NCBI RefSeq assembly: GCF_963853765.1
Contig: NC_088854.1
Span: forward strand, 57,846,001 to 57,910,000
Length of the DNA: 64,000 nucleotides
Origin: Magallana gigas
Taxonomy: Eukaryota
Direction: 5' to 3'
Position 1 is the stretch's first letter. Each line of letters opens with the position of its first letter. The notes beneath the pieces are model-generated. The model saw only the letters and a list, made by a program, of their open reading frames with translations, was not told the origin of the DNA and did not search any database. Shown in pieces: positions 1 through 59,631 of this stretch. A program made the translations under genes and the position numbers.

Positions 1-2811
1 TCTCCTTGGTGGTCGAAATCTAAAACAATGTCAACAAATTAACAATGATCCAACACTTTCCAAACCTTTTTAACAATGGTCAAAACTTTCCAAGCTTTCT
101 TTTTGATAATGCTTTAATCCTTTCCAAATTTTCTTTTCAACAATGATCCAAATCATGAGCAAGAATCCCTTTTCTTACCCTTTCACAGGTCAAGCACTGC
201 ACTGAGCTCAAGATTTTACCATCAAATATGTCTGATATCACACTTCTGTATTGCACATTTTTCTTGTTTCCTAATGGAACAAAACAAGTGTTATATCTTT
301 TTTATAAATTCCACTCTGAACCAATATATTGGTACATGCAAATGGTAATAAAATAAAACATTTTCTATTACACATATTATGAATTTCACAAATACTCACC
401 CTTTGGTCCAAGAGATGCTTTAGATGAATACTGAGACTTTTTGGAGTCCACATTTTCTGAGAACTTCCGGGTCCTGCTGGAACTTTTCTCTGTGTCTCCC
501 TTTCCCCCATCCGAGGGCTCTTTACCCCTGCCCCCTTGTTTCATCATCTTGTTGCTCTGTGTGTCACTGTCTTTAGAGGCAATGCTATCCCCCGCCCCGG
601 AATCCTGGTCACTGTTATTCACCTGAATGTAAGTTTTCCCACCTGACACTATACTGTTTGGACACTGATTTTGATTTTCTTTGTTCAGCAGAGTTGAGTC
701 TGTCAAATTTTTTTCACTACTGTTTCCAGAATCACATGACTCGTAACACTCCTCTGATTGGGTACTGCTATTAGAATCTCCCGACAACTGCCTGTGATGA
801 TTATTTTCTGTTTTATCACCACTCGTCTCTTCATCGTCATCATCATCAGTAACCAGGGGTTGTTTTAATTCTTCATGGATTTGATCCATAAAACATCTCA
901 AGAATTCCTGAGCATCCTTTTATTAATAAATAAAAATTTCATATTCTTTTAGTATTAAAATGTTGCTTCACATTTATGTAGAGGACAATATTTTTGAAGC
1001 CAATTTTCTACAAGTTATACCTGTTGAGAATATCCTCTGAACATTGGATGAACTACTTTTATGCCAGTAACAACTCCATTTGGAATGACATAGCTGGGCC
1101 TACAAAAAATTTTCAACCAAGATTTATGCTTTCAAGAAACAAATTGTAAATATATTCACATGCATATTTTCATCAAGTTTTATTTATGCAAACATACATT
1201 ATCATGGATTAGAAAGAACCTACAATTTTCATTCAGGAAGTTCTTATACTATATTGTCAGATTTCATTGATAAACTTGACAATGAAACAATTCACTTGGA
1301 TTCAGGGGGGGGGGGGCAGTACCTCTTCTTGTGCCAGATTTCATTAACAAGCTTCATGTAGTTCTTGGACAACATGGGGGATCTCTCTGGTCTAACATAG
1401 GCTGAGCAGTCCAGGAAAAATCTGGTTAGTGGAGGACTGAAAATTAAAACATATAGTATAAGGCTTTATTACAATAGTATTCTCCTATCTACAAAGCAAA
1501 AAAAAATTCTCTAATAAGAATTAATTCAATAATAATGGTTTGCATTTCTTCTTTAAAATTGGCAATTGTATCAAATAAAGTGTATGCATCATGTACACTT
1601 CATATACAGTAATGATAAAGTGAGACATTCAGCATTTTAAAAAAGGAGTTGCAGAAATTTCACCAGTTGGATAAAGCTTGAACAGCTGCATTAAGGTAAC
1701 AGGTGTTCCCCAAATTCTGTAGTCCTGTTAATCCTACAATGTACAATAAATTTGTTATCAGATATTACTAAAATTTTAACCCCTTTATTGCTTCTTGGCC
1801 ATATTAAAATTCATTTTTTTTTCATTCATAAATAAGTAAAAACTAACAAACAGTCAGGATGGTCACTTCACCATGCTATTGCCATCTAAAAATGGTGGTT
1901 TGAATGTGTTTACCTCTAGGCTTCATGTTTTCGTCTTCACCCTCAGAGTCTGATTCTTCACCAGCTGAAATACTACGATATGGAGAACTGTCTGAGCCCA
2001 GCTTTCTGCTCCGTGATCCACTGCTAGGTAATGAACTCATTCCATCCTCCAACATATCACAGTCCTTTTTAATCGGAACACTGGCAGAGTTTTCTGGGAT
2101 GCTGAAAGGAAATTAAATTATGGTTCAGAAGAACTGCACACATTTAACTTCTTGTCTCTAGTAAACAACATGGTGGTATGGGTAATGGTGAAATACACAT
2201 ACATGAAGGTTGGTGTATTCCTTGATGGAAAAACCTCACTTTCACATCTGTAACACCATATTCGTAGAGTTGTCAAGTTGATTGTCAAATAATGTTGATA
2301 CTCCTGCAATAAAACCACCATACTATCAATTAAAGTATTACAATGTATATCTAATAATGCTTTAGTGAACATTAGCAAAAAGTAGAAAATAAAAATTAGT
2401 GAAAGTTACTGATTATGTGTTGAAATACAATTAACTAGCATTAGTTTTTCCTAATAACTTTTTTGAATGTTTAGAGTATATCTTACATCAGAGTGAGCGG
2501 AGCTGTGGTCGGAGTAGGACTCTCCACAGCCTACATACTGACAGGACCCAACCAAACACAGCCACAGGTTACTGGTGCTCACCTTACAGGTAAAACAACT
2601 TACAGGGCCCTGAAACAATCAAACAACTTTTAGTTGGCAAGCGCCCCTCAAAGACTTGTGCACAAAGTAAATCAGCCTTCTATGGGATGTTAGTGACGAA
2701 TGAGAGTGCTTGTGATAATTGATTTCATACCTGTTGCTTGCGTCTGAGCTCTTCCCAAGTAACGCTGTCTACTACATTCACATGGGGACATGCAGAAGTT
2801 TTTGCTGGCAT
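1..2811 (-). CDS. USP20/USP33: Ubiquitin carboxyl-terminal hydrolase 20/33 (zf-UBP + USP catalytic domain), 5' part; gene continues beyond the left edge
   Basis: Exons (minus): 2811-2731, 2609-2487, 2303-2203, 2101-1914, 1733-1664, 1436-1323, 1099-1021, 916-400, 270-179, 19-1. All are GT-AG and in phase. The translation gives [11 protein letters not shown]..., zf-[30 protein letters not shown] / [22 protein letters not shown], Cys box [28 protein letters not shown], then [19 protein letters not shown] and [23 protein letters not shown]. These match vertebrate USP20/USP33 as I recall them; an invertebrate copy is probably co-orthologous to both. Confidence 0.95.
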
Positions 2812-3450
2812 TCTTTATTTACCCTTGTCTAAATTAAAATCATCAGACATTTTAGTAAGATCTCTAAATATTTCACAAGCTAAAATGAGTATAGTTTCCC
2901 TTATAAATCAAATGCTTCAAATCTCTTCTTTAACAGTTTAATGTAATTAGCCGTATATGAAAATTTCTAACTGTAACCACTAATATAACCTGATGACATA
3001 TCATTTCTATAAATCAAATTGAAATAGCTTTCGTTTACTATGTATTCATTCAGACTTAAACTTTTGATGAATGTGAAGTCGATTTATAGACCTACTGTAT
3101 TATATGCACCCTTCCTAATTTTTTGTTCGTTTATCAAGCAAAACTAAACCACGCTCATCGGAACATGATTTTTGAGCTCTAGGGAGCAGTTTCGGGTTTG
3201 CTGCTGGTCATCGATCGGAGAGGAAGTAGTGTCTGGCTCAGTCGGACGTTTGAGATTTTTCGGCTATCTTCGACTTTATGTTGAGAGTTTGTACTCACAA
3301 ACCGAAGAGTTCCGAGTAGAACAAGAATTTTTATTCAAAATGGTGGAGAAAATTCTGACGATGGCGAAAATAAATCAGTGTGACTGTGTCTGTGGGTAAA
3401 CTCTCTCCTCCAGAATAAATGTAATTGGACCATTCCCAGAAATTTTGAAT
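2812..3450. promoter_or_regulatory. Shared bidirectional promoter region, USP20/33 - WDR47
   Basis: Divergent start codons lie 640 bp apart. There is a CpG-containing patch at ~3150-3370 and YY1-like AAAATGG/GATGGCG motifs near 3337-3367. TSSs were not determined. Confidence 0.6.
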
Positions 3451-10443
<6,993 letters not shown>

Positions 10444-12694: not shown

Positions 12695-15600
12695 TCAAAA
12701 GATATCCTCCGCATCATAGCTCACAATCTCCCTCTTGTCTTTGTAGGAGCTCTTCTGAGAATTACTGGCAGCTAAAAGATAACAATTTGTAACCCTGGTA
12801 AATGTCTTGCATGAATAATGTAAAACAGGTACATAATTTGGAGTTTAATAATAAATGTTTCCTAATTGTGGGTATACATGTATGTGGTACCAATACATTT
12901 GATTTCACAAGTATGTTATTGTACAAGACTCTTAACAAAACACTATGTAGACAAGAATAGAATTCCACGGTCCCCCGCCGGTCAAGCAGTATACTAGTAT
13001 ACTGTATATTGGAATATTTTCAAACATTCAGGGCTGTTCCAGAATTAAATGTGTGGGGAGGTTGGGAGGAACATTTTTTTACCCCCACCACCCATTTTTT
13101 ATACCCCCGCTCCGAAGGAGAGGGGGTATACTGTTTTACCCTTGTGTGTCTGTCTGTCTGTCCGTCCGTTTGTCCGTCTGTCTGTCTGTCTGTCCGTAAC
13201 AAAAATTTCTGTCGCATTTATCTCAGCAACTATTTATCGCAGATGCTTGAAATTTTAACACAGTGTTTGTTAAGGCATGCCATATCGTGGGATATATTTT
13301 TGTACCAATCGGATGTCAACTTCCTGTTAAATGACGACTTTGCTTATTTTTTAACCAAAATTTTCAAACAAATTTTCGTCAAAGATTTCTCAGCAACTGT
13401 TTATCGCAGATGCTTGAAATTTTTACACTGTATTTGTATAGGCATGCCATATCGTGGGATATATTTTTGTACCAATCAGACGTCAACTTCCTGTTAAATG
13501 ACAACTTTGTTTATTTTTAGCCAAAATTTTCAAACAAATTTCCGTCAAAGAATTCTCAGCAACTGTTTATCGCAGATGCTTGAAATTTTTACACAGTATT
13601 TGTATAGGCGTGCTATATCGTGGGATGTATTTTTGTACCAATCAGACTTCAACTTCCTGTTAAATGACGACTTTGTTTATTTTTAGCCAAAATTTTCAAA
13701 CAAATTTTCCTCAAAGATTTCTCAGCAACTATTTATTGCAGATGCTCGAAATTTTTACACAATATTTGTATAGGCATTCCATATGGTGGGATATATTTCT
13801 CTACCAATCGGGTGTCAACTTCCTGTTAAATGACGACTTTGTTTATTTTTAGCCAAAATTTTCAAACAAATTTTTGTCAAAGATTTCTCAGCAGCTATTT
13901 ATCGCAGATGCTTGAAATTTTAACACATTATTTGTTTTGGCATGCCATATTGTGGGATATATTTTTGTATCAATCGGATGTCAACTTCCTGTTAAATAAT
14001 GACTGTTTATTTTTTGCCAAAATTTTTAAACAAATTTTCGTCAAAGATTTCTCAGCAGCTATTTATCGGAGATGTTTGAAATTTTTACACAGTGTTTGTT
14101 AAGGCATGCCATATCGTGGGATATATTTTTGTACCAATCAGACGTCATCTTCCTGTTAAATGAGTACTTTGTTTATTTTAGCCAAAATTTTCAAACAATT
14201 TTCCTCAAAAATTTCTTAGCATCTATGTATCGCAGATGCTTGAAATTTTAACACACTATTTGTATAGGCATGCCATATTGTGGGATATATTTCTGTACCA
14301 ATCAGATGCCAGCTTTCTGTTAAATGTCGACTTTGCTTATTTTGCATATTCACATCAGAGCGGGGGTATCACTAGTGAGCATTGGCTCACAGATATCTTG
14401 TTTTTTCTATTTTTCCTGTCGCAAATATATCAAAAATACTACAATCTAAAAGAACTTGACCAAGATAATAGTGGTATAAACATTTGGTATAAATTTAATG
14501 AAAATCCGTCAAAATTTGTAGGTATGAGAGCGCTTACAAGGTCAATTTTTTTTATAAAACGGAGACGTTATTGTGGTCAAAGTCCCATAACTCCAACAAA
14601 AAGTATCGACCAATGATGATTTTCGAACTTGACCAAGGTAATAGTAGTATAAACATTTGGTATAAATTTAATGAAAATCTGTCAAAATTTGTAGGTATGA
14701 GAGCGCTTACAAGGTCAATTTTTGGATAAAACAGAGTCATTATTGTGATCAAAGTCCTATAACTCCAACAAAAAGTATCGACCAATGCTGATTTTCGAAC
14801 TTGACCAAAGTATTAGTGGTATAAACATTTAGTATAAATTTAATGAAAATCGGTCAAAATTTGTAGGTATGAGAGCGCTTACAAAAAAGTGTGACGGACG
14901 GACACACGGACGCACAGACGCACGCACGCACGCCCGGCATTTCTATGTCCCCGCACCGCGTTGCGGCGGGGGACAATTAAAGGCTTGCAAAAAGAGCACC
15001 ATACCTATGGAGGACCAGGATTTGGTAGACTGGTCATTGTTCTGATCAAAAGATGGCTGTCTACGTGCCATGGTCACTTTTAACTGAATTCCTTCAACCA
15101 TTGCCCCATTCACCTATAGAGGAAAGTAATGAAACAATGTCAAACAATATTAAACTATTACGGTGAATTAACCATGCATCGGACACATACCTTGGATCGG
15201 ACAACTTTGTTTATAAATATACAAATAAATGTGCATGCGCTCTTGTGTTGTTTCGTATATTCCTGAATTACAACAAATGATTTTTATCATTATTAAGAAT
15301 TTGACAGTCACATTGTCAAAGAAATAGCAATATAGGTATCATAAAATGACGCCAAATACGACATCATTGAAAATTTAGTTACGAAGATTTTACACTAAAG
15401 CATTATTTGAATGTTGTGCGTTTGATTGTGAATTAGTGAAAATGCACCCTCTGCGTAAAATAATTAGAAAAAAGTAAGTTTTGAAACAAAATTTGAGTAA
15501 AATAAGTCCAAGAAATTTGAACAATTAATGTCAAGGTCATTTTTGCTCCATATGTTCATTTCACCATGGATCGGACGCAAATTAACCATGCATCGGACAG

Positions 15601-18027
15601 TTTTCACTGCATGATTTCTTCTAATAATAAGGATATTATGTGCCCATTCCTTGTGTTATACTTTAAATGTGAAGTAAAATAAAAATTAAAAAAATAATTG
15701 ATACAAACATTTTCCTCAGACCACTTAAAAATCGAGTTTTACGAACACAGGCTTTTTAGTCCAAAGTTCCTGTAGGAGCTGGCACGATAAAGAACCCCTT
15801 ATGATAAATATTCATTTAAACAGAAGCACTAGTCTAAATTCCTAAATGTAGATTTGAGGATTTACATTAAAAGAAATCTGAATAGCAATTGAATAAATTA
15901 ATATTTTCGAACCTTTGTATTTTTGCATTAAAACCAGAAAATGTTATTTTTAATCTCTACTGTTCTGCTATAGCTGTCCGATGCTTGGTAAATATTGTCC
16001 GATCCATGGTGAAATAGTTCAACACTTCATTAATGTGCTTTATTTTCTACATTTTGAACAATTTCACAAATTTTTCTCCAATAATTATGCAAGGGGAAAA
16101 ACTGTAACTTTTAAAACAAGTTTTATTTATATTTGAACAATATTTGATGCGTGAACAAAGGGAAAAATCCAAAGGTGCCTGATGCATGGTGAAATCACCC
16201 TAAATAGAATCTCTTTTATTTATTTACCTACGGAGCAAAGGATGAAACTGTTACAATGTATCCATTGACCAAAAATTTGTTTACAACAAAAAAGTACCTC
16301 AGCAATGGCTGTATCTGCCGACTCCATTCTCTCAAAAGAAACAAAACCAACACTGAAAAACATCAAGACATCTGTGATTACAAAGGTCATATAAAATACA
16401 TTAATGAAGTATTAACCTCTTACTATCATAAACAAAAATAACATATAGACCTTGTAGAAAAAGACATACTGTTTATCCCGCTCCATATTGATGTTGAGTA
16501 TGGTGCCTATATTAGAGAAAGCCTTCCTGAGGATCTCCTCAGTGATCCCTAATCCATTAACATAAATCGTGTTTCCTTTCTTAGGCAGGTCGTAGTCTCG
16601 ATCCCGTCTCTCCTGCTGAGCTCTTTCTTCCCTTCTTTCTTCTCTTTCACGATCATAACCTGGTGGGAAAGGGTAAATTGATCAAACTGGTTCAAATCTT
16701 CTATTAAACAATACCTGTTATTGCTGTATATAGAATTTCTTCAAATTAGAATCATGTCGTGATGAATGAAATTTTCTAAACATGTCTAATTAGGAGATAA
16801 ATAGGACAGATACACAAAGTAATACCTCCGCTGACAAAACTGTCATACAGGCCCCTCATCCTTGGTCTCTGAGAAGTTTTCTGTTAAAAAAAAAAATAGC
16901 AACAAAAATTATCAAGCAATCAATATCTAAACTCTATTTTAAATAATAAATGAACGTCAAGTCAGTTTTTGCTTCTTTACATTTCCATCTTTGTCTTCTT
17001 CCTCGGCTTGAGCTGCTGAAAAAGGTTGAAATCCTACAGCTGTTGGGGTCTTCTCAGGATCCTAATAAAGAGGTCAGCACATTTCAAGAAATCCGATAAT
17101 GAATACACCTTTTTAGCACTTACTTAATATTTTACAATGTATAATTCTATAAATTATACTGATGAATAAGTTTTGATATAGGCAATAATAGATGATTTCA
17201 AATTACCTTTAATTTTCTCTCTTGGTTCTTGGATCGTTTAAAACTTTGTTTCTCATTGTCTACTTTGATTTTGATCGACTGCAAAAAAAAAAGAAAATCA
17301 TTGACAGTCAAAAATTATAACAAAACACTGTTTGTCAAAAAGATAATAACTTATTTCTTAGCATTTTTGCTTATCTCTGTAGGGTACATAAATAAAATAT
17401 GCTGCATGATCTGCGATGTTTACCCCTGACTTGAGCAGTTTCTTGGCTTGTTCCTTGGCATCTTCTGCAGACTCAGCTGCAGCTGTAAGACAGAGATATC
17501 ATTTATTATAGACATACATTTCACAGTTTATACTCAAACAATTTTACTCTGGCATAGAATGCTTGTCGATGTATTAGACTAAAAATAATATATACTTATC
17601 ATTTTAGTGCAACCAATATGCTCGTTCATGTGCAAGAATTTTGATTCAGAGAATGTCACTGACGCTGGCTAATAAGGTTACTGTTTGTCACAAACTTACG
17701 TCTTTTAGCAGGAGCCGCCTCAGCTTGTACCCGCTCTGGTTTTGCTGTTCTTATTGCTTGTAATGCCTTTTTCTGTTAAAATTAAGAATTTTAGATTTAT
17801 TTAGTTATTGAGTCAAACAAAAGTGCAAGGTAGAAAGTTTAAAAATCGAAAATTTTAGGTTTTCTTTATTCACAGAATGGTAGCTTGTAGAAATCTTTTC
17901 CTCCCAAAACTATCTTATTTGAATTCATTGATAAACAAAAAAATACCTTCTTTTTCAAAGTGGCATATTTTTGCTTCAAAATGAGCTCTTCTTCGGTTAA
18001 ATTTTGTGGAAAATTGACGTAAACCAT
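12695..18027 (-). CDS. NELFE: Negative elongation factor E (RRM protein), ~283 aa
   Basis: Exons (minus): 18027-17947, 17772-17700, 17482-17424, 17278-17207, 17061-16981, 16880-16826, 16659-16470, 16352-16298, 15113-15005, 12771-12695 (852 nt, in frame). MVYVNFPQNLTEEELILKQKYATLKKKKKAL, EQAKKLLKSG, FKRSK..ERKLKDPEK, GLYDSFVS, RRM KKGNTIYV..FVSFERMESADTAIAEVNG..QLKVTMARRQP and C-terminal KDKREIVSYD all follow NELF-E. None of these exons appears in the supplied ORF track. Confidence 0.93.
12950..14980 (-). mobile_element. Outer HINE/pearl-like element (interrupted) with ~172-bp tandem units
   Basis: Perfect 11-bp subterminal inverted repeats GTCCCCCGCCG (12970-12980) / CGGCGGGGGAC (14964-14974). 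A GACG/CACG microsatellite lies at 14892-14934. About 2.7 units restart at GAACTTGACCAA near 14452, 14626 and 14797. ACAAGAAT terminus at 12951. Confidence 0.8.
13095..14406 (+). mobile_element. Inner, intact-looking HINE with ~7 tandem 166-bp units, inserted into a T-run of the outer element
   Basis: Perfect 12-bp subterminal IR ATACCCCCGCTC (13101-13112) / GAGCGGGGGTAT (14358-14369), GTCT/GTCC microsatellite at 13146-13197, and 3' hairpin GTGAGC-ATTG-GCTCAC (14375-14390) followed by CTTG-T(n). The 166-bp period is visible in the repeated ORFs starting at 13498, 13664 and 13830. Confidence 0.9.
15161..16200. mobile_element. 1040-bp non-autonomous TIR element (Tc1/mariner-like MITE) with TA TSD in a NELFE intron
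   Basis: TA flanks at 15159-15160 and 16201-16202. Imperfect ~25-bp TIRs CGGTGAATTAACCATGCATCGGACA / TGCCTGATGCATGGTGAAATCACCC. Seven copies of a 13-bp CCATG(C/G)ATCGGAC-like motif, four direct and three inverted. Confidence 0.75.
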
Positions 18028-18327
18028 TTTTACAAGTAGATAAAAATTACTCTTCTTAAAATGGAGGTAACAAAATGGTCGGTTACACTAATTAACGAAA
18101 TGCTCGAATTAAAAGTCTAAAACAGAATTCTCAAGTTTCATCTATTGCTCTATAAAATCTCATTTTTATTATTTCGTAAATAAATTTTGTCTTTATCATT
18201 TATTGAAATGCTAATATAAAATTCTTCTGACATAATATAAAATATTTTAAAACTTGTATTATGATTCATGTAGTTAGCGCACCTTGAAGGAAAACGTGTG
18301 CCTACTTTCACTTTACCAAATATTGTG
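18028..18327. promoter_or_regulatory. Compact bidirectional promoter, NELFE - QTRT2
   Basis: Only 300 bp separate the divergent ATGs (18027 and 18328). AAAATGG-type motifs lie at ~18058-18082. Confidence 0.65.
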
Positions 18328-21300
18328 ATGAGATTTTCATTACGATCCGTGTCGCATTGTGGCTGTCGAGTGGGAACACTCTCGTGTACAAGAGCGGTGA
18401 ATGATGGAGAGAACAAAGAAGTGGAAACCCCTCTGTGTACACTCTATACGAAAAAGGGTAAGCATTGTGTATAGAACTGGGGATATAAGTTCTGTAGTGT
18501 CCCGTTTGAAATAGTAAATGAATCATGTATTTGATTAATTGGTCACCTGAGTCGCACTGTGAAAAGAAATTGTGAATAAAAACAAATAATGTACTGGTTT
18601 TATACATACATGGTAAATGTAAAAATGCATCTAATACATGTAATATAATTGGGATTTTACTTATGTGTTAAAATTCCAAAAACTGTGCCAGATACATACC
18701 GGTACATGTTAATTGATGCTAAATTACATGTATTTTAATACTAAACTTTGATCTATTACTTTGTACGAACAACAAGATGTATATTTCCAAGTTTAATGCA
18801 GCAGGGACGTATATATTAATGGGATAGGCAAATCTCGCGAGTCTCGCCGAAATCATGCGGTACGTGATTTCTTAGGTAATTTTTAACTTCATATATCTAT
18901 AATGTTATCTGATATATTGTTATAAAAACTTAAACAAACTATCTTGAAATTATTCTAGAATTGTTATTTGTACTTTATAACCCTGATGATCTGATCATAA
19001 TTATGACAGAGTTCTCAAAACCCCGAGACCCATTTTTGCCCCATTTCCAAGAGTACGTAAAAATTGATGTTTATTTTCTTTATATCTAAATTAGTTTACT
19101 ACATGTGATTAAAAATGTATGAAAAAGCTATTCCTTTTAACAAGAGGAAATAAATAATCTAATGAAATATGAATATTTTACTGGGATAAAACAGAGTTTT
19201 AAAAACATGTCAAGATAGTTTGGGAAGTATCGGTAAACATGGTGAATGTAGAAGTTGCCTATCCCATTAGTATATACGTCCCTTGTTACAGGTATTACTT
19301 CATCTTTATTTTATCCTTTTAGGCAGTGCTCCATATCTTTCAGTTGACATGCTGAAAAGAATTGAAAAATTACCTCACATTGCAAACATGCATTTATCTT
19401 CTCTGTGAGTTATGTTAATATTTTATTACTAGTAATATCTTAAAATTGTTTGCCTCTCCTAATTGAAAGTACCGGTGATCAACTCTTATTTTTGTGATTT
19501 TTTTCATATTATTGAATAGCCATATTGACTCCAATAAGACATTTCCTTTTAGGGCAGATTATACAGAAGCTTTAAATAAGTTCCAGCATGGTGTTGGCCA
19601 GTTTACAGCATTGCAGGTATTCCTTGTTCAGAATTTAAACATTTGTATTCATATTTTACTGTTTGTAAATTCCTGGCTTCTTGTTTCACAGGATTTTTTG
19701 GTGTACATCTCTGTACATGACACAGGTATAGAGATCCCCTCCGGATACAACACAAAGGCAGGCACAGCTGTCTGGAACAAAGCTGGCAAGAAACTGGTCA
19801 GTAAACATAAATAATTTGTTATTGATATGCTCCCTTATAGTAAATCAGATCAAACAGTATATTCTCTGGTAGAAACTGGTCAATGAAACTGATCTGAGTT
19901 CTTAATATTCTCCCCTTTAGAAACTAGTTGTGTGATGCTATCAAGACATGTATATGGTAGTCCCCGATACTTGTTGTAGATATCTTCTCTATTCTCATCA
20001 TGTGACACCAAGTTCGATATTTCAAGAAATTTTGGATATTCTTATGCATAAAGATTTCATATTCTACATGGCATTAAAATGCAAGTGAATTTTGTAGATA
20101 GAGCCCCAGCAGTTTGTGAAATGTCAGGAGGCCTTCCGTCCCACTTTCTACCAAGCCCTGTCTGACAGTGACACTGACAAGAATTCTGGGAAGAAGCGTG
20201 CAATGAAAGCTGTGGACCGGACACTTGACTTCCTGGACACGATACTAGAATTACATAAAAAGTCAGAGGTGAGACACGACAAAAATTCAATCAGTCCTTG
20301 CTTTCTTTCTTTATTTCCTCCCAAAGGAGATTATCATAACATATTTACAAAAATACAAACATATAGACAATTGTAGAGAAAACGATATAATATAGGTCTA
20401 CTATGACATTTGCTTTTCAACATTGGTAATGGGGCCTATTTAAAATCTTGTATAAATGTAAAAAATGTCCCTAAATTGAGATATAAGAGCTCTGTAATAT
20501 TAAAATAAAGTCTAAAGGGAGATTTCAAATTTCTATGAAAAGTCTTTGGCAATGCTAAGTTTGAGGAGCTATGATTAGATGCTGGAGCTCCATTAAGTGT
20601 TTCAGCTTAGATCCTTTAAATGTTTGAGATGAGATACTGAAGCTCCATTAAATGTTTGAGCTGAGATACTGAAGCTCCATGAAATGTTTGAGATGAGATA
20701 CTGAAGCTTCATGCAATATTTGAGATGAGATATTGAAGCTCCATGAAATGTTTGAGATGAGATACTGAAGCTCCATGAAATGTTTGAGCTGAGATACTGA
20801 AGCTCCATGAAATGTTTGAGATAAAATACTGAAGCTCCGTGAAATGTTTAAGATGAGATACTGAAGCTCCACGAAATCTTTGAGATGAGATAATAGATCT
20901 CCATGAAATGTTTGAGATGAGATACTGAAGCTCCATGAAATGTTTGAGCTGAAATACTGAAGCTCCGTGAAATGTTTAAGATGAGATACTGAAGCTCCAT
21001 GAAATCTTTGAGATGAGATACTAGAGCTCCATGAAATGTTTGAGCTTAGGTATTAGAGCTCCATGTAATGTTTGAGATGAGATACAAGGGCTCCATGAAA
21101 TGTTTGAGATGAGATACTAGAGCTCCATGTAATGTTTGAGATGAGATACTGAAGCTCCATGTAATGTTTGAAATGAGATACCGAAGCTCCCTGTAAAGTT
21201 TGAGATGAGATACCAAAGCTCCATGTAATGTTTGAGATGAGATACTGAAGCTCCATGTAATGCTTGAAATGAGATACCAAAGCTCCCTGTAATGTTTGAG

Positions 21301-24300
21301 ATGAGATACCAAAGCTCCCTGTAATGTTTGAGATGAGATACTAGAGCTCCATGAAATTTTTTAGCTTAGGTATTAGAGTTCCTTGAAATGTTTGATATGA
21401 GATACATGTACTAGAGCTTTATGAAATGTTTGAGCTGAGATATTAAAGTTTATTGAATTGTTTTAGCTGAGATACCAAAGCTTTATTAAAAGTTTGAGCT
21501 GAGATATACTAGAGTTTTATGATTTGTTTTGGTGATCAACAACTTCTGTTTCCCGGTACATGGCTATTCTGTAATCTTCACCTGGGTCTTGTTTTGTAGA
21601 GACTGCGAGATGTGGGTGTGTTTGGTTCTGTGGAGGGGGGATTCCATGAGGAGGCAAGAATGAGGTCGGCCAGGGAAACAGCTGCAAGGAATGTTGATGG
21701 TGAGCAAATACCATAGGCCATGCTAGAGTTACCTCCCTTACAGCATCTCAAATTATTCTCCATTTACTGTTAAAATTTACAGCCTGAGTGAACTTTTTTT
21801 TTTAGGATTTGTGATAGAAGGTTTTTATGCACAGAATGAGAAAAATAAACAAATAGATGTTGAAGAAATAAAAGATTTATGCAACAAAGTGTTTGTAAGT
21901 ATATATACTGTATATATTTGGCATATTTATAAAGAAGAAAAATATTAAAACTTCTTTTTCAGAACTATAAGTTGTGAGGTATTTTATCAAATATGTTTTT
22001 ATTTAAGAAAATTTTGCCGGAGGAAAAGCCACGACTTATGCACGCTGTTTGGTCACCTGATCAGGTTGTTATGGCGTTGGAGCTTGGCATTGATGTATTT
22101 GACAGCTGGTATCCTTAACACAAACGTCTGTGGATATCATCCATTAACATATTTATTCAATGTTTACAAACTCAACAGAAACAGTATCAGTGGTAATGTT
22201 TTTAACATCATTCAGGCAGCTTATGGGTTTCTCAGCATTTTCAGTTACCAGTATAAGGAGCTGGAAATGAATCCACCATTCTTGTTTATGGCTTTTCCAT
22301 GAGCTGACAAATGTAAGAAAAACCTTTGAAGCAAGGAGATGTGAAACTATAGGGCTTTCCCAAATGATATGGAAGTGAGTTCAAGAAACACTGGCTCAGC
22401 AGTCCTGCAGGTTTATTTTGTAAATAAACTGTCTGTTCATGTTAAGTAACCCCTGCTGGTGGAAATCGTATCTAATTCTTAGTGCTGATTTAATAGGTTA
22501 AAGAAACTTAAAATTCTAGCACTCTGAATTTACCATGCCCTGTAAAATTTCAAAAAAAGGGTTTTTTTTACATGATAATTTTCCTTGAAGTTTTTTTTGT
22601 ATTTCATATACCTTTACATTTATTTCCTATAAATAACTTTCTTTATTTTATTGTTTTGTTTTAGTCTTCCACTGAATAACATATACATGTATATGTGATT
22701 TTTTAAATTTTCATGCAGTACACTTATTACACCCTTTTGTACAATACACATGTAGCTTTGTTTTCCTTCATTGTCCAAGTTACCCATGGCTGGTCACAGA
22801 GAGGGGTGGGGCCCTAGTCTTCTCCTTCCAGTATCACAACAATTCGGAGAATGAAAGAGAGGCTAGGTCAACTGATGGGTTCGAAATCTCCTTGAAAGAT
22901 AAAAGGTATGGAACAGGTGTGTAAAGAGAGGCTGAAGTGTGTGAGGATTGGCGGATACTTCCATCTCTTTGTAGAGGGCTTCTTCACCGTACCATTCCTC
23001 AAGTGTGGAATCCGGAATCTCTCGGCCAGTAGATCTTTTTTAGTTCAAGAACAGGGTTTAAGAATTCATTTTAAATGTGTGTTCACAGCTGAAAAATATT
23101 TATAAACACACTCTGTATTTGTTATATATAAATATTTTACCTGTCAGTGATTACTTGTAAATAAATGTGGAGTGATGTGGGTGCTTAGATGCTGCCTTTT
23201 GAACACTGACATAATGTCTCTCTGGTCACTTTTCAGCATGTTTGAGGACTTCGGAGCCCCTGTACCTGGCTGCTCTTGTTACACCTGTCAGAATTTTACA
23301 CGGTCCTACATTCACCATCTCCTGAACACCTCAGAGCTCCTAGCTCCAGTCCTCCTTATGATGTGAGTCCATTACTTCCTCTAGGTGCAGTCTACAGTAG
23401 TAATACTGCTAGTACTTATAAACCAATACATCAATTTTGCCTCTTGTTGAATATACCTTAGTTAATTGCACTTTGGGGATTTTGAGGGGAGGAGGGGGCA
23501 TTTTTTTAATGGAATGCCGTGCAAGACTTTAGTGAATGTTGTCAGAAAATTTGGTCATGGTATGATGTGTGTAGATTAGAATTTGATCTGGTTAATTATC
23601 ACCATGTGCGGTGTTTAGGGGGTATTTAGGTCACTCTGCACATAAATACTTATGGATATACATACACGCCTCTTATAAAGTTTCAAGGTTATTCAACTCA
23701 GAAAAGAACCTGAAATTCTTTATGGGATTGTACTGCTTATATCAGTGAATTTGATGCCTCTTTACCCATGATATTTTTCAAATAAGAAAAGAACCTGTGG
23801 TATTTAAAAGAGTGTGGTAATTCCCGGTCTATGTTTATACTGGAGATAGTGTTCAGAACAAATTGAAAAGAATTTTTATGTCAAATTTGATTAAATTCAT
23901 TGTGAAAATGAAGTGAAATTTGATAAGAGAGTTAAGAGTGGCTTTGTAATGTATATAAAGATCAGATAAGATTTGAGGAGATAATCGTCAATAGAAAAAA
24001 AAGCTAAGGTAGATTTCTTTGACAAGAAAGGTGGTCTTGCACTGTACACACCTGAATGTATATACCTGTCCAGGTAGATGATGTCTCACCTGTATCAGCT
24101 GACACTCTGTCAATAGGCTCTCTTGTGTTATGCAGGGATATCAAAATTCAACACAAAACCAATCTCATCTTACTAGGTCATTCCTTACTGTCATTTGTTT
24201 AAAACAGATGAATGAAAATTGGTTTTGTGCATGCATTGATATTTTTTTTACCTCTTTTATTTTCCAGACACAATTTTCATCATTACTTCGAATTCTTTGA

Positions 24301-24391
24301 ATCCCTTCGCTCATCATTGAAGACTGACCAATTCCTGAAACTAAAGACATTGATTCTAGAACAAAGGCCATCACAAGAGCCACCAAAATGA
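18328..24391 (+). CDS. QTRT2: Queuine tRNA-ribosyltransferase accessory subunit 2 (QTRTD1), ~405 aa
   Basis: Exons: 18328-18457, 19323-19404, 19553-19616, 19692-19796, 20098-20268, 21600-21699, 21806-21894, 22008-22108, 22780-22905, 23237-23362, 24268-24391 (1218 nt, in frame). Motifs [71 protein letters not shown] and the zinc site [38 protein letters not shown] match QTRT2. Confidence 0.94.
18802..19285. mobile_element. ~480-bp MITE in QTRT2 intron 1
   Basis: 29-bp TIR with one mismatch: AGGGACGTATATATTAATGGGATAGGCAA (18803-18831) vs TTGCCTATCCCATTAGTATATACGTCCCT (19255-19283). The right end is also found at ~52810-52896. No clear TSD, so the superfamily is unassigned. Confidence 0.75.
20575..21515. 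repeat. Minisatellite, 32-bp unit GAGATGAGATACTGAAGCTCCATGAAATGTTT, ~29 copies, QTRT2 intron 5
   Basis: Direct reading of the tandem units, which are degenerate at both ends. Confidence 0.95.
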
Positions 24392-24693
24392 CACAGTTAC
24401 AGGCAGGATGGTGTGACAAAATGAGTGTGAGAAGCAGTCCTGGGACAGGATTCCTTGTGACACAATTATCACCCAGAGGGGCTACAAAATGGTGGGGGAT
24501 TATTCTGATTAGAGGGGAGGTCCCAGTAAATTACACCAGTTAGTTTTACATAAATCAGAAATTGCTGTTTTTAAATAAACACTGGAAAGGAATAAGTAAT
24601 GTTCCTTAGATAAAAAAAAAAAAATCAAACAAAACGACTTGTTTCAATCTTTTTCCCCTCAAATTTGTATTTAATTCTTTTTTTGTGGTTGAG

Positions 24694-24730
24694 GTGGGGG
24701 GGGGGGGGGGGGGGGAGAGAGAGAGAGAGA
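24694..24730. repeat. G homopolymer followed by (GA)n
   Basis: About 20 G followed by about 8 GA units. Confidence 0.9.
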
Positions 24731-27116
24731 GCACGGAATGGGCTTCCTGCCTCCAGAAGGTATGCATGGTGAAAGTTTACGTGATTTCTGATTCCTGCAA
24801 GAGGGCAGTGTTTTGAGAAATTCCAAATTCCTCGATCCTCCTGATCACGGGGGATGTACGGAGTCTCCATACCTGTACCAATTGCAGGTTCACGTAATGC
24901 AACATTATATTGAATTATGTAATCATGCTTACAACCAAGAGACATATTTCACTGGTATTAATTAGCGATCGAGAATTCTACCCGGTTCTTCCAGCACGAT
25001 TCGTTAATTAAAACGTAAGGGAAGCCCCTGATGTTGACTAGGGACAGACACTGCCGTAGCTCAGGGTGACATGATATTGAGTCGCTCTGTCGTATCTCTC
25101 CGTCTGGACCGCACGTGTTTTCCACTATGGAGGTTTACAGTACAGACAAAATGAAAGTCGCATTTTTTATCGCGGTGTCAAATAACTCCGTAAACCCCTC
25201 CGCGCTGTTATGGGCACGATCTGATGCCGACTCAAACATGTTGTGTAAATGTTTGAGGACGGCATTGGGGGAGATTTGTACATGAAACTAATTCTTAAGG
25301 CTTTCTTTGACAATTAAAAACGGTAAATAATTGGTCCTTGACAACCATTGAAATCAATTTCCTATAGTTTGTCTTTTCTGCAGAAACTTTTACCTCTTGC
25401 ATTAAATGTCAGAATTTGTCAACTGATCGGGATTAACTATTTGCTTTGGGCATGTTAAGTTCCAGAGAGACCACCCCACTAAGGGCGAGCTATTCCAAAC
25501 CTGCTGACAATGCGAATCTGGCGATTGAATTAAATACTTTTTGACACTGTAATGTTTCACAATTGATAGGGAAGTGAAGACATAGGCTATATTTAAATGG
25601 TAACTTACACTGCTATGTTTAAGCAGAGGACATAAATATGTAATGGGGCAGGTGAAGCACCTGTAAATCCGGAGAATGTTACCCCTAGAGGCCCGCGGGG
25701 TCGTTTGTCTGGGCCGTGTCTGACGCGGCGGATGCGAGAGTATGAAGATGGTTGATCAAAGTAGATTGCTGATTGACCTTCTACCGCTTATTGAATGTAC
25801 CCATGTTCAACGTGGTCTTTGCAACATGCAAGTTTAAATTGGGGTGGGGGTGGGGGGGGGGGGCAGGGGGTAGGCACGTTAGTAAATTTCATCATCTAAA
25901 TACTAATCGGACACTTGGCGATCCCAGAGACCCCATCAAGAAAGCGCCTGAAGACTTTTTTTGTATGTAGCTCATGGTTAATTAATGTGAAAACCCATTC
26001 AATTCCAACCGCAGGTTGAACTGGCAACAGAGAGTTTGCGGTATAACCACCCCCTCAAACAATATATCGGCAGCCGATGAGGATGCCTTTGGGTTTACCA
26101 GGCGGGGCGAGGGTGGGGTGGATGACGGAAACAGGAAATTGACCCAAGGGCATTTAATTGTCACTAGTGGCATCGATTGTGTGCAAGATTATCAATTGTT
26201 GTGATCCTGTTAGAATTTGCTGGTTAGTTAACAAAGTCTACAGAGAAGTCTGAGAACGCTAATTACAGCTAGTCGGCAAACCACAGGTAGCCCGGGTCAG
26301 GGCTGCGGTTTCTGTGGCCGAGGTGTCAGAACAGCTCAAACTTTCTGTCAATGTCGATTAGTAATGCGCTAAAATCAATGTCTGTCGCCACGGACAAAAA
26401 ATGAAGAAATTAGGTTCCCATCGCCCTGGAAACTGTTTTCTGTAAACAATCACTAGGTTAGGCTGCTGAGATAGGATCTTATCGGTCCATCAGAAACCCG
26501 GTACTTGTAGGACGCTGATGATATAAACTCGGGAGAAGGGACGCGGAAGCCAGTGCCCCCTTTCTCCCGTATCAGCCTCAGTGGTTGTAAAATGTTGTGT
26601 GGCAATAACTTGATGGCCCTCAACGGAACACGGCCTCCCCTCTCCCCATTCTGATGATATTTTCATTAAACGCGATAGCAATTTATCAGAATCAATATTT
26701 TTAGATAAGCTGAAACGTTGTCCGCATAAAACATAAAATTCAAGGATCCGATTTTTCTCCTTCCTTCGAACTGCTGTTTGATTTTTGTGGTCTTTTATCG
26801 GTGAACTGATGCGGCGATGACGAGCAAGGTTAACAAATATTCACAGAGAGATAACCGTTCTTATGCCGAACTCTCCACGTCTTGGCCAATGTAACAGCTG
26901 TCAAAATTCAACTTTATGACTTTTCAAACATCTTTTGATATGATCACTTCTTTCCACATGGCTTAAATGCTTGGAAAAAAAAACCCGACTTGGCAGAGTT
27001 TCATTCACACACTTTCTTGCGTGTGAAAAATTTTAACAATTGATATAACGCCATCTCTTTTTATCCTTTTATTGTTTTTGACAATTACTTAATGTTTCTC
27101 CGAGTTATATCTGATA

Positions 27117-27118
<2 letters not shown>

Positions 27119-27170: not shown

Positions 27171-27172
<2 letters not shown>

Positions 27173-53959: not shown

Positions 53960-54019
53960 CTTGTGAAGAATGCGACAGACCAGTTTGGTGACTTGGTAGG
54001 GCACCTGACTAGAGATTCA
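53960..54019 (+). mobile_element. Fragment of a tRNA-derived repeat (probably the same family as 63641-63753)
   Basis: TTGGTAGGGCACCTGACTAGAGATTCA resembles a tRNA D-arm/anticodon-arm, preceded by GACAGACCAG (cf. GTCAGACCAG at ~63649). Not a complete cloverleaf. Confidence 0.4.
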
Positions 54020-54272
54020 TATGAAGGGGCGGGGGGGGGGGGCTTAACCTCAGTGTACAACACTGCATAGTGTGAATAGGGGTTTCGCTCTAGTTGGATA
54101 TTGATTCAAGCAAAAAGATTAAATATTCAGACCATCGAGTTAAGCTATTTGGTTAAATCAAGAGATTATGTTTGTCCTGATAGTTGTTAAGATTTCTGCA
54201 CTTGAAATACAAAATGTTCATACTGCATTTATTAATAATTTTAAAAAAAAATTTATTTCATAGGACACTGTG

Positions 54273-57200
54273 ATGGCGTCACAACAAGTTGTAGGAGGCT
54301 ACAATGTAGAGATATTTATGGGGGAAAATTTTGACAGAAAATTTCTGTGTAACCACTGTAGTTTGATTTTGAGAGACCCTGTACAAAGTTATTGCGGTCA
54401 CAGATTCTGTCGATCATGCATGGAAAGCATCATCAGGTAAAATGTTTTTTACACTTAATTTTTTTTGGTCAAGGTGCACGCAAAATGGGATGTTTTAATG
54501 TTTGGTTCTGTAAAAGTGTGCTTATTCTATCAACTGCTTGCATTGATAAAATGAATTATTGAAATATTGACTCGATCTGTTTTAAATACAGATTAAAAAT
54601 AATTCTTATGGTTTTTTGTATTTTTTTTATATTTTGAACCTCAAAGAAAACTATAAAATAAGTATATAGATATGATCTACATGTATTTTATGCTTTTATT
54701 TTTCAAGATATTGTAATTGCTACTGGAATAATTGCAATATTTTATCCCTTCCCATTAGATAAAGCTCAAATAAGGCTACATCTTTGCAGCTACTATGAAT
54801 ACTTTTTAAAAGGAACGGTAAACACTATCAGTTGATATAGTTCAATTATTTTTGCTACAGGTCCCATGAACAAGTGAGATGTCAGTCCTGTATTGAAGAA
54901 GGGACAATGGATGAAGAGTACAGTATACTGAAAATGGACCAGGTTAGTGAGGGGAGAGAACTCCAGGGTTCAACTTTCAATAAGTAAAATTATAAGACAC
55001 ATTCTTTTTCATCTTATAACCTATCACCCTGCTCACTCCTTTAAAGATCTTGCTTTATAAGCTCATCTGAACTAAAAATATGTTATATCGCCATTATCTT
55101 TTCAATGGAATATATTATTAATGTTTTTTGGAAATTAATACGTATTGAATAGGAATAATAGTTGATATTGTGTTATGTATTTAAGCTATATGTAATTAGC
55201 TGTTTGTGGTTCCATTTGGACATTATTGCATAGGTGAGCAATGTAACCCATGGGCCCCTTGTTTTAGAATTTCAAAAAAGTACAGGTATATGTATACTCT
55301 AAAATAATATAATTTAATATAGATTTTAGAATAACATAACTCATAGATGATAGAACTATTCTTAAAAGAGATTAAAACTTTCCATATTTATTAAATGTAC
55401 ATTTCAATGGAAAGCTTTTAAAATATTTGAATAACTTTTAGATGTTCCCAGACAATGCAGTCAGAAGAGAAATGGGAGCCATGGCCGCTAAGTGCATCAA
55501 TCCTAACTGTACATGGAAAGGAATCTTCAAGCAGTATGAAGTATGTACCACATTCTGCATTTACAATTAAGCTTTGTCATCTCGAACATCAACTCTCTGA
55601 ATACCATTGATAGTTGGAGTTATATTTTAGTCTTGTTTTAACATCAATATCTTGAATCCTTAGATATATGGAAGTTTCACTGTTTTTAATTACATTTGTA
55701 CCTCACTGCATACTTCGATGGGATAAGCTTTATTTTGTTGAATTTTAATACTGAACTGCAATCTGATTTTCAGGCTCATGTGGCCGAGTGTAAATTTAAG
55801 CAAGTTCCCTGTCAACTGTGTGGTAACTTGATTGAACCACAGGCCCTCCAAGATCACATGACCAAGGAATGTACAAAAAGAAAAATTGCCTGCAAGCACT
55901 GTCAGTCAGAGGTCGTAGTTGAGAACCTGGAGGTGGGTGTTTGTACAGGGGGATTTTCATGCATGCTTACAATGAAATAGTCAAAGCACTTATCTGCAAG
56001 ATTTCTGTGAAGAATTAAGACTACAACACATTTGAAATATAGTGTTTAGTTATGTTTACATGTAGTTGTATTTGGTTCTTTTTGCACAAACAACAATCTT
56101 GATATAGAATTTGATGGTAAAGAAAGGTAAATAATTTTTGTTTTTAGATAATGTAGACAACATTCTGTTGTTGGATATTAAATTTTAAATTTTGTTCGAT
56201 ATAATACAATGCTTATAAATATACATGTATGTGTCATTCTTTTTTCTGTATTTGTTGGCACACAGGCACATAATGCAGAATGTCCCAAAATGCCCATCAA
56301 ATGTGACTCTTGTGGCAAGAAAAAAATACCCAGAGACAAGGTATTTCTCTATTAAGCTCTGTGAGTCAAACTGGCTTTATAAGAATATAATTTGTGTAGA
56401 ATATTGTGAAATATACATGTACTTATAAGGTTAATTTAGACAAATTAAGCTATGGGTAGTTTATACACAATCTATTGGATTTTTCATGATTTGTGTATGT
56501 ACTGGTGTATGATTTTTATCAAACATGCTTTGTAAGTTTTCTATCCCCCAAGCCTGAAAGACTTTGAGTAGGGATATAATTTTAACAGAGTTGGAATTCT
56601 TCTGAGAAAAATGGAATTGATAAACTTTGAATTAAAAATTGAATTATTCCTGACTATTGTATATGTTTTATTTAGATGCAACATCACATAGACAAAGAGT
56701 GTTCCAATCAGAAGGTCCCATGTCTACCAGACTGTGGTGATGTATGTACAGGTCTTACTCATAGGGAAACCAGTACAAGATGTGAAACTTTTGTAATACA
56801 TGTATTGCTTGGTTGAATTTGTCATTTATTAAACATGCATTACTCAGGTAGTAGATTCCAATCAATTTTTTATACATACAGAAATCAATACAATGAACTG
56901 CATATGTACCTGTGCTTCTAGCAGTTTTTTCTCAACTTTCTATAGATCAGCAGAGATAAGTTTGTGGAGCATCTGGATAAACGTCCTGGGATCCACTTAA
57001 AAGCTCTGTCGGACAACTTAAACTCTTTACGTAATGATATAAACTCAAGGCTTGAAGCTGTCATTGTTCAAAGTGACCTTGGACAGTTTATTTCACACAT
57101 CACTGAACTCAAACAAAAAGTTCACCAACAGGAACAGCTGATTCAAACTCTACAAGGTCATCAAGCAGCCAATGGCACACCAGCAAATTCAAATCCAAGT

Positions 57201-59631
57201 GTGATACAAGCCAAAGTTCAGGCCTTGGAGCTGAAGACAGGTACCTTTGAAGGCATTGTTACGACACTTCACAGAGAAATTGAACGGTGTATTACTGCAA
57301 TTGAGAATGTTGAGAGGGGCAGGCAGGGTGAAAAGCAAGTAGTGGATAGTCTAGAGAAGAAGATACGTGCTCTGGAGAGGAGTATCTCACTGAAGGTGGG
57401 TTTAGTTTATTGTTGTTTAACAATGAACATCATATTGAATGTGAAGATGTACATGTACATTCTTGCACAAAAAGTTTAGCAGTAATACCTTTCTCCATTT
57501 TGTGTACAGTACTTTGCTTTGTAGCTCTTGGTAATGGTATATATTTACTATATTCTATCTTACTTCTTGTATAAATTGACACAAAAATTGATATATGCAA
57601 ATAATTTGTTAACAACCTACGATTTCTCTTTGAAGGATGTAGCTCTTGCTGAACAGGAACTGCGAATAAAGACGCTGGAATTGACGACTTATGATGGAAC
57701 GCTGTTCTGGAAGATTTCTGAGTGGAGCAAGCGGCGATCGGAGGCACAGAGCAACCAAGTGACCAGTCTCTACTCCCCCATCTTCTACTCCAGCAAGAAT
57801 GGCTACAAGATGTGTGCCAGACTCTACCCCAATGGAGATGGCATGGGCAAAAACACACACATGTCAATTTTCTTTGTTGTCATGAGAGGTATGAATTTGA
57901 TTAGATTATTCTTTTTACAGATTAAATCTTAATCAGATAGTGTAAATAAATATACTTGAGAGTTATCAGAACTTGTTCATGTATTTTGTGGATAACCCAT
58001 GATAACAAATCATTTGTTTTCTCAGAGATATTGATGTTTTTACCTTAATGCTTGAAAATTATTTTGTTTTAGAAAAATACATTTACTTTCTTAGACTACT
58101 CAATTATGAGTTATCAAAATTATTATCAAATTTGTTCTCTCACTATATTTTATAATTCTGCATTGTTTAAGAGACCTACCAGGTAGACATGATAAGAGAT
58201 CGAAATTTCATAATCTTATTTTTCATTTATTATGTTTGAAATGGTTTACTTGGGTATTCTGAATGTTTGATTAAAGTCACAGGTGCTTGAGGACAGGATC
58301 GACCCCCCCCCCCTTCCACCCCCCCCCCCCAATATATAGACCCCCGGGACTTTATTATATTATATATGTAGATGGTCTGATTTTTTAGAAATATTTGTTT
58401 TAAGCAATTTTGGGCAATGAATGTATAAATTAGATTAGAAATATGTCATAAAAAGATAATTTAAAAAATAATAATAAAGTCCCGGGGGTCTATAATCTGG
58501 GGGGGGGGGGGGGTGTGGATGGGGGGGGGGGTCGATCCTGTCCTCAAGCACCTGTGATTAAAGTTTGAATGTTAGAAGTTAAGATACAAGAGAGACACAG
58601 AGGTTGGAATTGATTGTTATGCTGACATTTGTTTACAAATAGTAATGTAATATATAACTATAATTTTAACAAATTGACTCACTGCAAACAGGATAGACTG
58701 ATTCATTGTGTTATGAATATTATTATTTACAAAAGAAAGCAACATTTGATTGCAATGTATACAATATGACACATATGTAAACAACAACAAGACTCAAGCT
58801 CTGTTTACAAAACAAGGATATTTAAAACTTTATAACTCTGTAACATGATATTTGACATTAAAATTTGAATGAAGCATAAAAAATGCCCATATTAATTATT
58901 CTAAACATTAAAAAATGTAAAAATTAAATGTGAAAATGTTGAGGACAGATTTTAGGAAACATATATCACCGTGAACAACCACATATTTTATACATGTACC
59001 AATATACAAGTTTATTTGAACAAATTTGCAATTGTTGCATAGCTCCCTACTATCATGAATTCCCCTTGCACACATCTCTCATAGAGCTGCTTAACCAGTG
59101 AGCAAGTAAAGAACGTCATCAGTCCTACTTCATCACTTGTTGTGCATATGACGTATGGCTGATGAATTTACCGTTACACATGAGGTTGCTTTAATGACCC
59201 CTATCGTATTAAAGTCTCTATAAAATTTGCTTCAAATATGTTTCATTTATTAAAATTTTTCATATTTTCATGAATGCATCAGAAAAGTATTATTAAAATG
59301 TAACTTCATAGCTTTACATGTACATCCACTGAGAGACAATCATTTATATAACTGGGTTCAATTTTTAGGTAACTTTGATGCTTTACTTCAATGGCCATTC
59401 TCATACCGTGTGACATTCATGCTCCTTGATCAGAACAATAAAGAACACCAGGTGGACTCATTTCGCCCCGACCCAAACAGTAGCTCTTTCAAACGCCCCA
59501 CTACAGAGATGAACATTGCGAGTGGGTGCCCACTCTTTATTCCGCTTGCCAAACTTGATGATCCAAGTCTTGCGTATGTCAAGGAGGACACTATGTTTAT
59601 CAAACTGGTGGTAGATGTACCAAGGGGTTGA
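54273..59631 (+). CDS. TRAF2: TNF receptor-associated factor 2 (RING, TRAF zinc fingers, coiled coil, MATH), ~536 aa
   Basis: Exons: 54273-54436, 54861-54942, 55442-55540, 55774-55932, 56266-56340, 56676-56741, 56946-57395, 57636-57888, 59369-59631 (1611 nt, in frame). RING CNHCSLILRDPVQSYCGHRFCRSC, FPDNAVRRE, CPKMPIKCDSCGKKKIPRDK, LELKTGTFEGIVTTLHREIER, LERSISLKD and MATH TYDGTLFWKIS..NGYKMCARLYPNGDG..FRPDPNSSSFKRPTTEMNIASGCPLF best follow TRAF2 among the TRAFs. Confidence 0.92.
55055..55265 (+). mobile_element. Short HINE remnant in TRAF2 intron 2
   Basis: AAGCTCATCTGAAC near 55060 and AGGTGAGCAATGTAACCCATGGGCCCCTTGTT (55232-55263) match the two ends of the 43381-47107 family. Confidence 0.55.
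58278..58556. mobile_element. 279-bp hAT-like (or P-like) MITE with 8-bp TSD in the last TRAF2 intron
   Basis: TSD ATTAAAGT at 58270-58277 and 58557-58564. The TIRs begin with a perfect CACAGGTGCTTGAGGACAGGATCGACCCCC / GGGGGTCGATCCTGTCCTCAAGCACCTGTG and extend imperfectly ~80 bp through poly-C/poly-G tracts. Confidence 0.85.

Follow-up and report, generated by a model that had tools for sequence, protein, structure and literature searches.

NRARP and TRAF1/2 share a chromosome but not a conserved neighbourhood: a six-gene stretch of the oyster Magallana gigas

When six genes whose human counterparts recall the regions paralogous to the major histocompatibility complex (MHC) lie close together in a mollusc, has a neighbourhood been preserved, or a chromosome? 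The question is raised by a window of 64,000 nt of Magallana gigas DNA (contig NC_088854.1), AT-rich and free of N runs, of which positions 1-59631 form the feature span examined here and which belongs to a chromosome of 61,469,542 bp (61.47 Mb). Along the window run, in order, a USP20/33-type deubiquitinase gene (- strand), WDR47 (+), NELFE (-), QTRT2 (+), NRARP (+) and a TRAF gene (+). A preliminary description of this DNA had placed all six inside 60 kb, and matches to Pfam, PDB and protein sequences recover every one of them where it had been reported. The same description had read the group as pre-duplication 'proto-MHC' linkage, with a retained NRARP-TRAF2 neighbourhood and an implied functional grouping of signalling genes.

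The explanation that we favor, at a probability of roughly 0.8, is that this is an ordinary gene-dense oyster stretch, whose genes come from one ancestral bilaterian linkage group and have kept their chromosome membership while their order was shuffled. In vertebrates, that linkage group would have given rise to, among others, the MHC-paralogous portions of human chromosomes 1, 6, 9, and 19; the six genes would be separately transcribed housekeeping or signalling genes. Over some 550 million years (My), membership of one chromosome (macrosynteny) would have been kept and gene order and adjacency lost; order would not be preserved because shuffling within the chromosome moved these genes, elsewhere among animals, to sites megabases from one another. 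The close spacing of NRARP and TRAF in the oyster would then be a lineage-specific result of shuffling, with no shown functional meaning.

Chromosome membership across bilaterians

NRARP and TRAF1/2 travel together at chromosome scale in bivalves, a hemichordate, amphioxus, and human. The two share one chromosome in five bivalves (the oyster, Pecten, Mactra, Sinanodonta, and Dreissena), in the one hemichordate, and in amphioxus. Both genes could be positioned in the hemichordate Glandiceps talaboti (OZ203274.1, 25.08 Mb; NRARP at 2.03 Mb and TRAF1/2 at 4.19 Mb), in amphioxus (CM027638.1, 25.39 Mb; 16.25 Mb and 5.02 Mb), and in Mactra antiquata (CM103830.1, 32.14 Mb; 30.63 Mb and 14.72 Mb). For Pecten maximus, Sinanodonta woodiana, and Dreissena polymorpha, sharing was judged by record sizes identical to the base, NRARP and a TRAF2-like gene being found on records of 55,138,983 bp, 148,733,821 bp, and 111,411,237 bp, respectively. 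Human TRAF2 and NRARP, together with NOTCH1, are all listed at 9q34.3 (PMC3774745), which confirms the map position given for the pair in the preliminary description.

The linkage of WDR47 with these two genes is partly shown across four mollusc lineages. WDR47 and a TRAF2-like gene lie on one record in Ostrea edulis, Pinctada imbricata, and Pomacea canaliculata. For WDR47 and NRARP, a shared record was found in Liolophura, a chiton, and in an ENA contig of 6.06 Mb. The claim of pre-duplication linkage therefore survives as a statement about chromosome membership, for NRARP and TRAF1/2 from bivalves to amphioxus and human and for WDR47 within molluscs. From human map positions by themselves, it is plausible to place USP20/33 and NELFE in this linkage group as well, and we infer that QTRT2 was either relocated on the vertebrate lineage or came from a second linkage group fused into the oyster chromosome.

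Published work gives this picture its background. A 2026 amphioxus paper reports that one cephalochordate chromosome has its human counterparts on chromosomes 1, 6, 9, and 19, in the blocks 1q23.3-q25.3, 6p21.33-p21.31 (GNL1 to FKBP5), 9q33.2-q34.3 (DAB2IP to EHMT1), and 19p13.2-p13.11 (PMC13012124). Lamb et al. (2026) put single-gene translocation at <1% of families per 100 My (PMC13689697), and therefore bivalve neighbours would share a linkage group by default. A full-text literature search returned nothing relevant tying 'proto-MHC' to TRAF2, NRARP, USP20, WDR47, or RDBP. We take TRAF2, NRARP, and USP20 to lie inside the 9q33.2-q34.3 block, between DAB2IP and EHMT1, and NELFE, as an MHC class III gene, inside the 6p21.33-p21.31 block. 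WDR47, presumably at 1p13.3, and USP33, presumably at 1p31.1, would fall outside the 1q block. Region 1p13-p12 holds the ohnologues VAV3 and NOTCH2.

In a different history, at least two ancestral linkage groups would have fused and intermingled on the way to the oyster and its 10 chromosomes; the block would mix their genes, and the proto-MHC flavor of five of the six would be partly a coincidence. QTRT2, which we place at human 3q13, would be accounted for directly, as would the presumed positions of USP33 (1p31) and WDR47 (1p13) beyond the 1q23-q25 block; tracing in other genomes, moreover, covers only three of the six, NRARP, TRAF1/2, and WDR47. The broad notion of a 'proto-MHC chromosome' is also contested: in the view of Nakatani et al., it lumps together several proto-vertebrate chromosomes (PMC8302630). 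We nevertheless regard such a mixture as unlikely: NRARP, TRAF1/2, and WDR47 are found together across molluscs (chiton, apple snail, and bivalves), NRARP and TRAF1/2 stay together in two deuterostomes despite differing karyotypes, and translocations of single genes are as rare as noted above.

Distance between NRARP and TRAF1/2

The 15 kb adjacency of NRARP and TRAF seen in the oyster is not conserved. Their oyster spacing of 15.25 kb compares with 2.16 Mb in Glandiceps, 11.2 Mb in amphioxus, and 15.9 Mb in Mactra, and in Sinanodonta their locus tags are ~1,700 apart (038409 versus 040104 and 040106). In Pecten and in a bivalve contig from ENA, no TRAF exon was found at 10 kb or less from NRARP; in Argopecten, NRARP is missing from the 7.8 kb that precede TRAF2.

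These distances were compared with random placement on the shared chromosome, the individual probabilities being combined by Fisher's method. They fit random placement with a combined p of 0.55 when human is left out and 0.20 when human is included at a spacing that we assume to be ~0.4 Mb. The neighbourhood described earlier as retained thus dissolves outside the oyster, where its members are 2-16 Mb apart in the three genomes in which both were positioned, in keeping with random placement, and the check proposed along with it, for adjacency beyond what membership of one linkage group would produce, reveals no excess (p = 0.20-0.55).

One could still argue that NRARP and TRAF1/2 form an ancient conserved microsyntenic pair, held together for example by regulatory elements in or beyond the neighbouring gene, that is intact in the oyster and loosened in human. 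The oyster pair does have no gene between its members, and for a pre-specified random pair on this chromosome so small a spacing has a chance of 5e-4; human NRARP and TRAF2 share a cytogenetic band (PMC3774745), and the 30 kb around oyster NRARP, in which no other gene is recognisable, resembles the surroundings frequent for developmental genes. The oyster pair, however, was picked from many after being seen, the combined p stays at 0.20 even when human is included, and the megabase distances, the Sinanodonta locus tags, and the empty flanks in Pecten, the ENA contig, and Argopecten all speak against a pair kept together. The genes do not behave as a microsyntenic pair should, and we consider this explanation very improbable.

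A bolder version holds that NRARP directly upstream of TRAF1/2 was the ancestral bilaterian state, broken independently in heterodont and unionid bivalves, in hemichordates, and in amphioxus, with the human spacing of ~0.4 Mb left as a remnant. If true, it would mean that a very old regulatory neighbourhood joined a Notch feedback gene to a TNF-pathway adaptor, but we would put only a slender chance on it. Least credible of all, and to be given next to no weight, is a co-regulated signalling cluster kept by selection, the functional grouping of Notch feedback gene, TNF/NF-kB adaptor, and deubiquitinase suggested at the outset: it draws on pathway annotations only, including a published report that USP20 dampens mammalian NF-kB signalling (PMC10362797), whereas its members lie on different strands with the unrelated WDR47, NELFE, and QTRT2 between them, their order is conserved in none of the other species examined, and no shared regulatory feature has been shown.

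The genes of the window

The nine-exon model of the window TRAF gene has GT-AG boundaries at every intron and a clean reading frame, and its product is 97.6% identical to an independently called oyster protein of equal length (536 amino acids [aa]); we regard the splicing model as validated because that independent protein agrees. A RING-type domain is encoded in exon 1, followed by zf-TRAF (8.6e-9) and by MATH across two exons (1e-15 and 1e-24). The top PDB matches are TRAF1 and TRAF2, and the protein is 84% identical to the 'TRAF2-like' proteins of Ostrea and Saccostrea. It aligns over its full length with the scallop orthologue, whose domains are RING, zf-TRAF, TRAF_BIRC3_bd, and MATH, and in a word search with that orthologue the best 119 named matches were all TRAF2 or TRAF1.

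Phylogeny sharpens this identification. An exhaustive profile search with the last MATH exon led to 150 cluster representatives, 49 of which entered a careful IQ-TREE analysis. In the resulting tree a TRAF3-like clade (sponge, echinoderm, and brachiopod) was split, with support of 100/99, from a group of 42 rows. In that group are TRAF1 and TRAF2 of vertebrates, TRAF2-like proteins of amphioxus and hemichordates, and a clade of molluscs (96/92) to which the window gene belongs. A quick tree of named sequences recovered the TRAF3-like split at 96-99 in the Shimodaira-Hasegawa-like approximate likelihood ratio test (SH-aLRT) and tracked the species tree through echinoderms, amphioxus, hemichordates, vertebrate TRAF1 plus TRAF2 (98), and Lingula plus molluscs (99). 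The clade of vertebrate TRAF1 plus TRAF2 (98-100) leaves the mollusc gene outside, and a duplication inside Pteriomorphia, common to oysters and Pinctada, produced two copies: A, short-branched and represented by the window gene, and B, the more diverged. In Pinctada both copies are on one 67.3 Mb record.

A one-to-one orthologue of human TRAF2 was accordingly rejected, given the vertebrate TRAF1 plus TRAF2 clade that excludes the mollusc gene and the oyster and pearl-oyster in-paralogues A and B. By its position in the trees, the window gene stands as pro-orthologue to both TRAF1 and TRAF2 of vertebrates and is one of the two in-paralogues. The label 'TRAF2' used in the preliminary description holds as to family and is too specific beyond that; the concern voiced there that the gene might be a mollusc-specific paralogue in place of TRAF2 does not apply in any sense that would harm the reading, although a paralogue B exists. 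Elsewhere, a MATH-only gene is found 8 kb downstream of the Glandiceps TRAF2-like gene, amphioxus has several TRAF2-like genes on one chromosome, and Sinanodonta has two near-adjacent copies (040104 and 040106). TRAF1/2-type genes tend toward local duplicates in other animals.

NRARP is an intronless open reading frame (ORF) with Ankyrin matches in Pfam, as expected of this family. It aligns with human NRARP (6py8_B) at 115 bits in one stretch, residues 11-106 of 114, and is 73% identical to scallop NRARP, the named orthologues from scallop to vertebrates ranging from 52 to 73%. The gene is isolated in ~30 kb without another recognisable gene: QTRT2 ends 14.3 kb to its left, and the TRAF ATG lies 15.25 kb to its right. 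Its flanks, 24391-38675 and 39022-54273, contain no recognisable coding sequence, in contrast with the tightly packed genes to the left. Coordinates of all features are collected in Table 1.

Table 1. Genes, exons, and tandem repeats located in the 64,000-nt window
Feature	Positions	Strand	Remarks
USP20/33-type deubiquitinase, N-terminal part	1..2811	-	ATG ~2811; gene extends past window start
USP20/33 exon-bearing ORFs	2728-2814, 2454-2618, 2121-2405 (coding ~2226-2310), 1879-2112, 1663-1764, 389-919	-	Two zf-UBP exons, within 2454-2618 and 2121-2405; catalytic Cys box 1663-1764; further USP exon 389-919
WDR47	3451..10443	+	LisH/CTLH, WDR47_COR, C-terminal WD40 propeller
WDR47 exon blocks	3451-4929, 6988-7098, 7230-7394, 7552-7722, 8109-8282, 8466-8594, ~9051-9290, 10279-10440	+	
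Satellite-like tandem array	9375-10040		Period 158 bp; between last two WDR47 exon blocks
Satellite-like tandem array	13221-14343		Between WDR47 and NELFE
Satellite-like tandem array	14452-14884		Between WDR47 and NELFE
NELFE (negative elongation factor E), probable	16223..18027	-	ATG 18027; 3' end may be below 16223
NELFE RRM exons	16415-16681, 16223-16411	-	
NELFE small exons, within ORFs	17659-17775, 17361-17498, 17201-17314, 16960-17061, 16779-16883	-	
QTRT2 (queuine tRNA-ribosyltransferase accessory subunit 2)	18328..24391	+	ATG 18328
QTRT2 exons, within	18328-18471, 19479-19811, 20098-20373, 22676-22921, 23151-23363; last within 24212-24391	+	
Minisatellite	20618-21506		32 bp x 27.6 copies; within QTRT2 intron
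Minisatellite	33694-34657		23 bp x 42 copies (alternative unit 111 bp); QTRT2-NRARP gap
NRARP	38675..39022	+	Single exon, 115 aa
TRAF1/2-family gene (oyster 'TRAF2-like', paralogue A)	54273..59631	+	536 aa, nine coding exons
TRAF exons 1-5	54273-54436, 54861-54942, 55442-55540, 55774-55932, 56266-56340	+	
TRAF exons 6-9	56676-56741, 56946-57395, 57636-57888, 59369-59631	+	

At the left edge of the window, a zf-UBP exon of the deubiquitinase gene matches Pfam PF02148, and its PDB matches are limited to USP33 (44 bits) and USP20 (36 bits). The zf-UBP and Cys-box exons are the features present in the window, the C-terminal DUSP domains falling outside it, and the gene probably belongs to USP20/33. 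UCH clusters in the Atlas were taken as a lead only. WDR47 is identified by a Pfam match to WDR47_COR at 1.8e-29 and by WD40 matches, the domains expected of the family. Its first exon is 100% identical to RefSeq 'WD repeat-containing protein 47 isoform X6 [Magallana gigas]', and eight exon blocks, from 3451 to 10440, match this annotated isoform. Isoform X6 is only 70% identical across 9051-9413 and matches the separate terminal exon block at 10279-10440; comparison of the sequences suggests that WDR47 has alternative 3' exons.

For NELFE, a PDB comparison of the RRM exon ranks RRM structures of NELF-E first among natural proteins with a name (E value of 7e-6), and the RRM is preceded by a run rich in R, E, and D. 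Against PDB, the N-terminal exon gave no match. Five small exons look collinear with human NELF-E motifs, and the gene is probably NELFE; NELF-E clusters at Atlas ranks 2-3 were again a lead only. QTRT2 was distinguished from its catalytic partner on single exons: the zinc-site exon scores 56 bits to QTRT2 versus 23 bits to QTRT1 in PDB, and by this single-exon comparison the gene is closer to the accessory subunit than to QTRT1. Two of its exons match the TGT domain, one of them slightly below the Pfam gathering score.

Two gene pairs are arranged head to head, USP20/33 with WDR47 (start codons 640 bp apart, 2809-3453) and NELFE with QTRT2 (ATGs ~300 bp apart, 18025-18330), and either spacer may serve as a bidirectional promoter for its two genes. 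Among metagenome-derived loci with the WDR47 first exon, 0 of 73 carried a zf-UBP or Cys-box exon of a USP gene in the flank, most flanks being short; two of these loci, at 64-67% identity and with >2 kb of upstream sequence, likewise had no USP exon. Judged from these loci, the USP20/33-WDR47 pair does not look broadly conserved.

A further 20 ORFs from the gaps gave no Pfam match, and no other Pfam-recognisable gene lies among the six; hidden extra genes or intact transposon ORFs between them were rejected on this basis. Among the three satellite-like arrays, the period is 166 bp at 13221-14343 (6.8 copies, 89% matches), 172 bp at 14452-14884, and 158 bp at 9375-10040, and the long ORFs within them are repeat artefacts. 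The repeats at 20618-21506 and 33694-34657 are minisatellites.

Weight of the evidence and comparison with known systems

Several observations count against a single, shuffled linkage group. The one-linkage-group statement is proven for half of the set, namely, NRARP, TRAF1/2, and WDR47, and in the land snail Bradybaena, a single exception, WDR47 and TRAF are on different large contigs. QTRT2 at human 3q13, where we take it to be, lies outside the paralogon altogether. The human NRARP-TRAF2 spacing of ~0.4 Mb would alone be a 5% event within a 16 Mb block, and the adjacency measurements leave out the closest relatives, Ostrea, Saccostrea, and Pinctada, as well as scallops beyond 10 kb. On the side of gene identity, the TRAF3 portion of the trees consists of invertebrate 'TRAF3-like' proteins only, with no labelled vertebrate TRAF3 or TRAF5.

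Retention of chromosome membership with loss of order is still the explanation that we prefer. The pattern is the known behavior of ancestral linkage groups, that is, ordinary macrosynteny, and it provides one more worked example in which invertebrate chromosomes retain the content, not the order, of the linkage group behind the vertebrate MHC-paralogous regions. It also illustrates that a striking adjacency in one species should not count as conserved or functional before other genomes are checked. By-products of the analysis are a verified nine-exon model of oyster TRAF1/2 and evidence for a TRAF1/2 duplication common to oysters and pearl oysters.

Among known genes, the window TRAF is most readily compared with molluscan genes called 'TRAF2' (scallop UniRef A0AAU6MWZ4 and the 'TRAF2-like' genes of Ostrea, Saccostrea, and Pecten), with which it has in common the architecture of RING, TRAF zinc fingers, coiled coil, and MATH. 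It is 53% identical to the scallop protein and falls in the same tree clade, but it differs from what the plain name 'TRAF2' implies in being a co-orthologue of vertebrate TRAF1 and TRAF2 and in having a sister paralogue B.

Among known genomic regions, the stretch resembles the MHC paralogon in that five of its six human counterparts are on chromosomes 1, 6, and 9. It differs in that the classical anchors NOTCH, PBX, RXR, BRD, C3/4/5, and PSMB are all missing from the window, and in the presumed positions of WDR47 and USP33 outside the 1q23-q25 block. The amphioxus proto-MHC orthologues themselves are dispersed over the whole chromosome and do not form a compact block (PMC13012124). In the bilaterian and metazoan ancestral linkage groups, orthologues from different phyla remain on a single chromosome but in scrambled order (Simakov et al. 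2022, PMC8809688; PMC13689697), and the same is seen here for NRARP, TRAF1/2, and WDR47.

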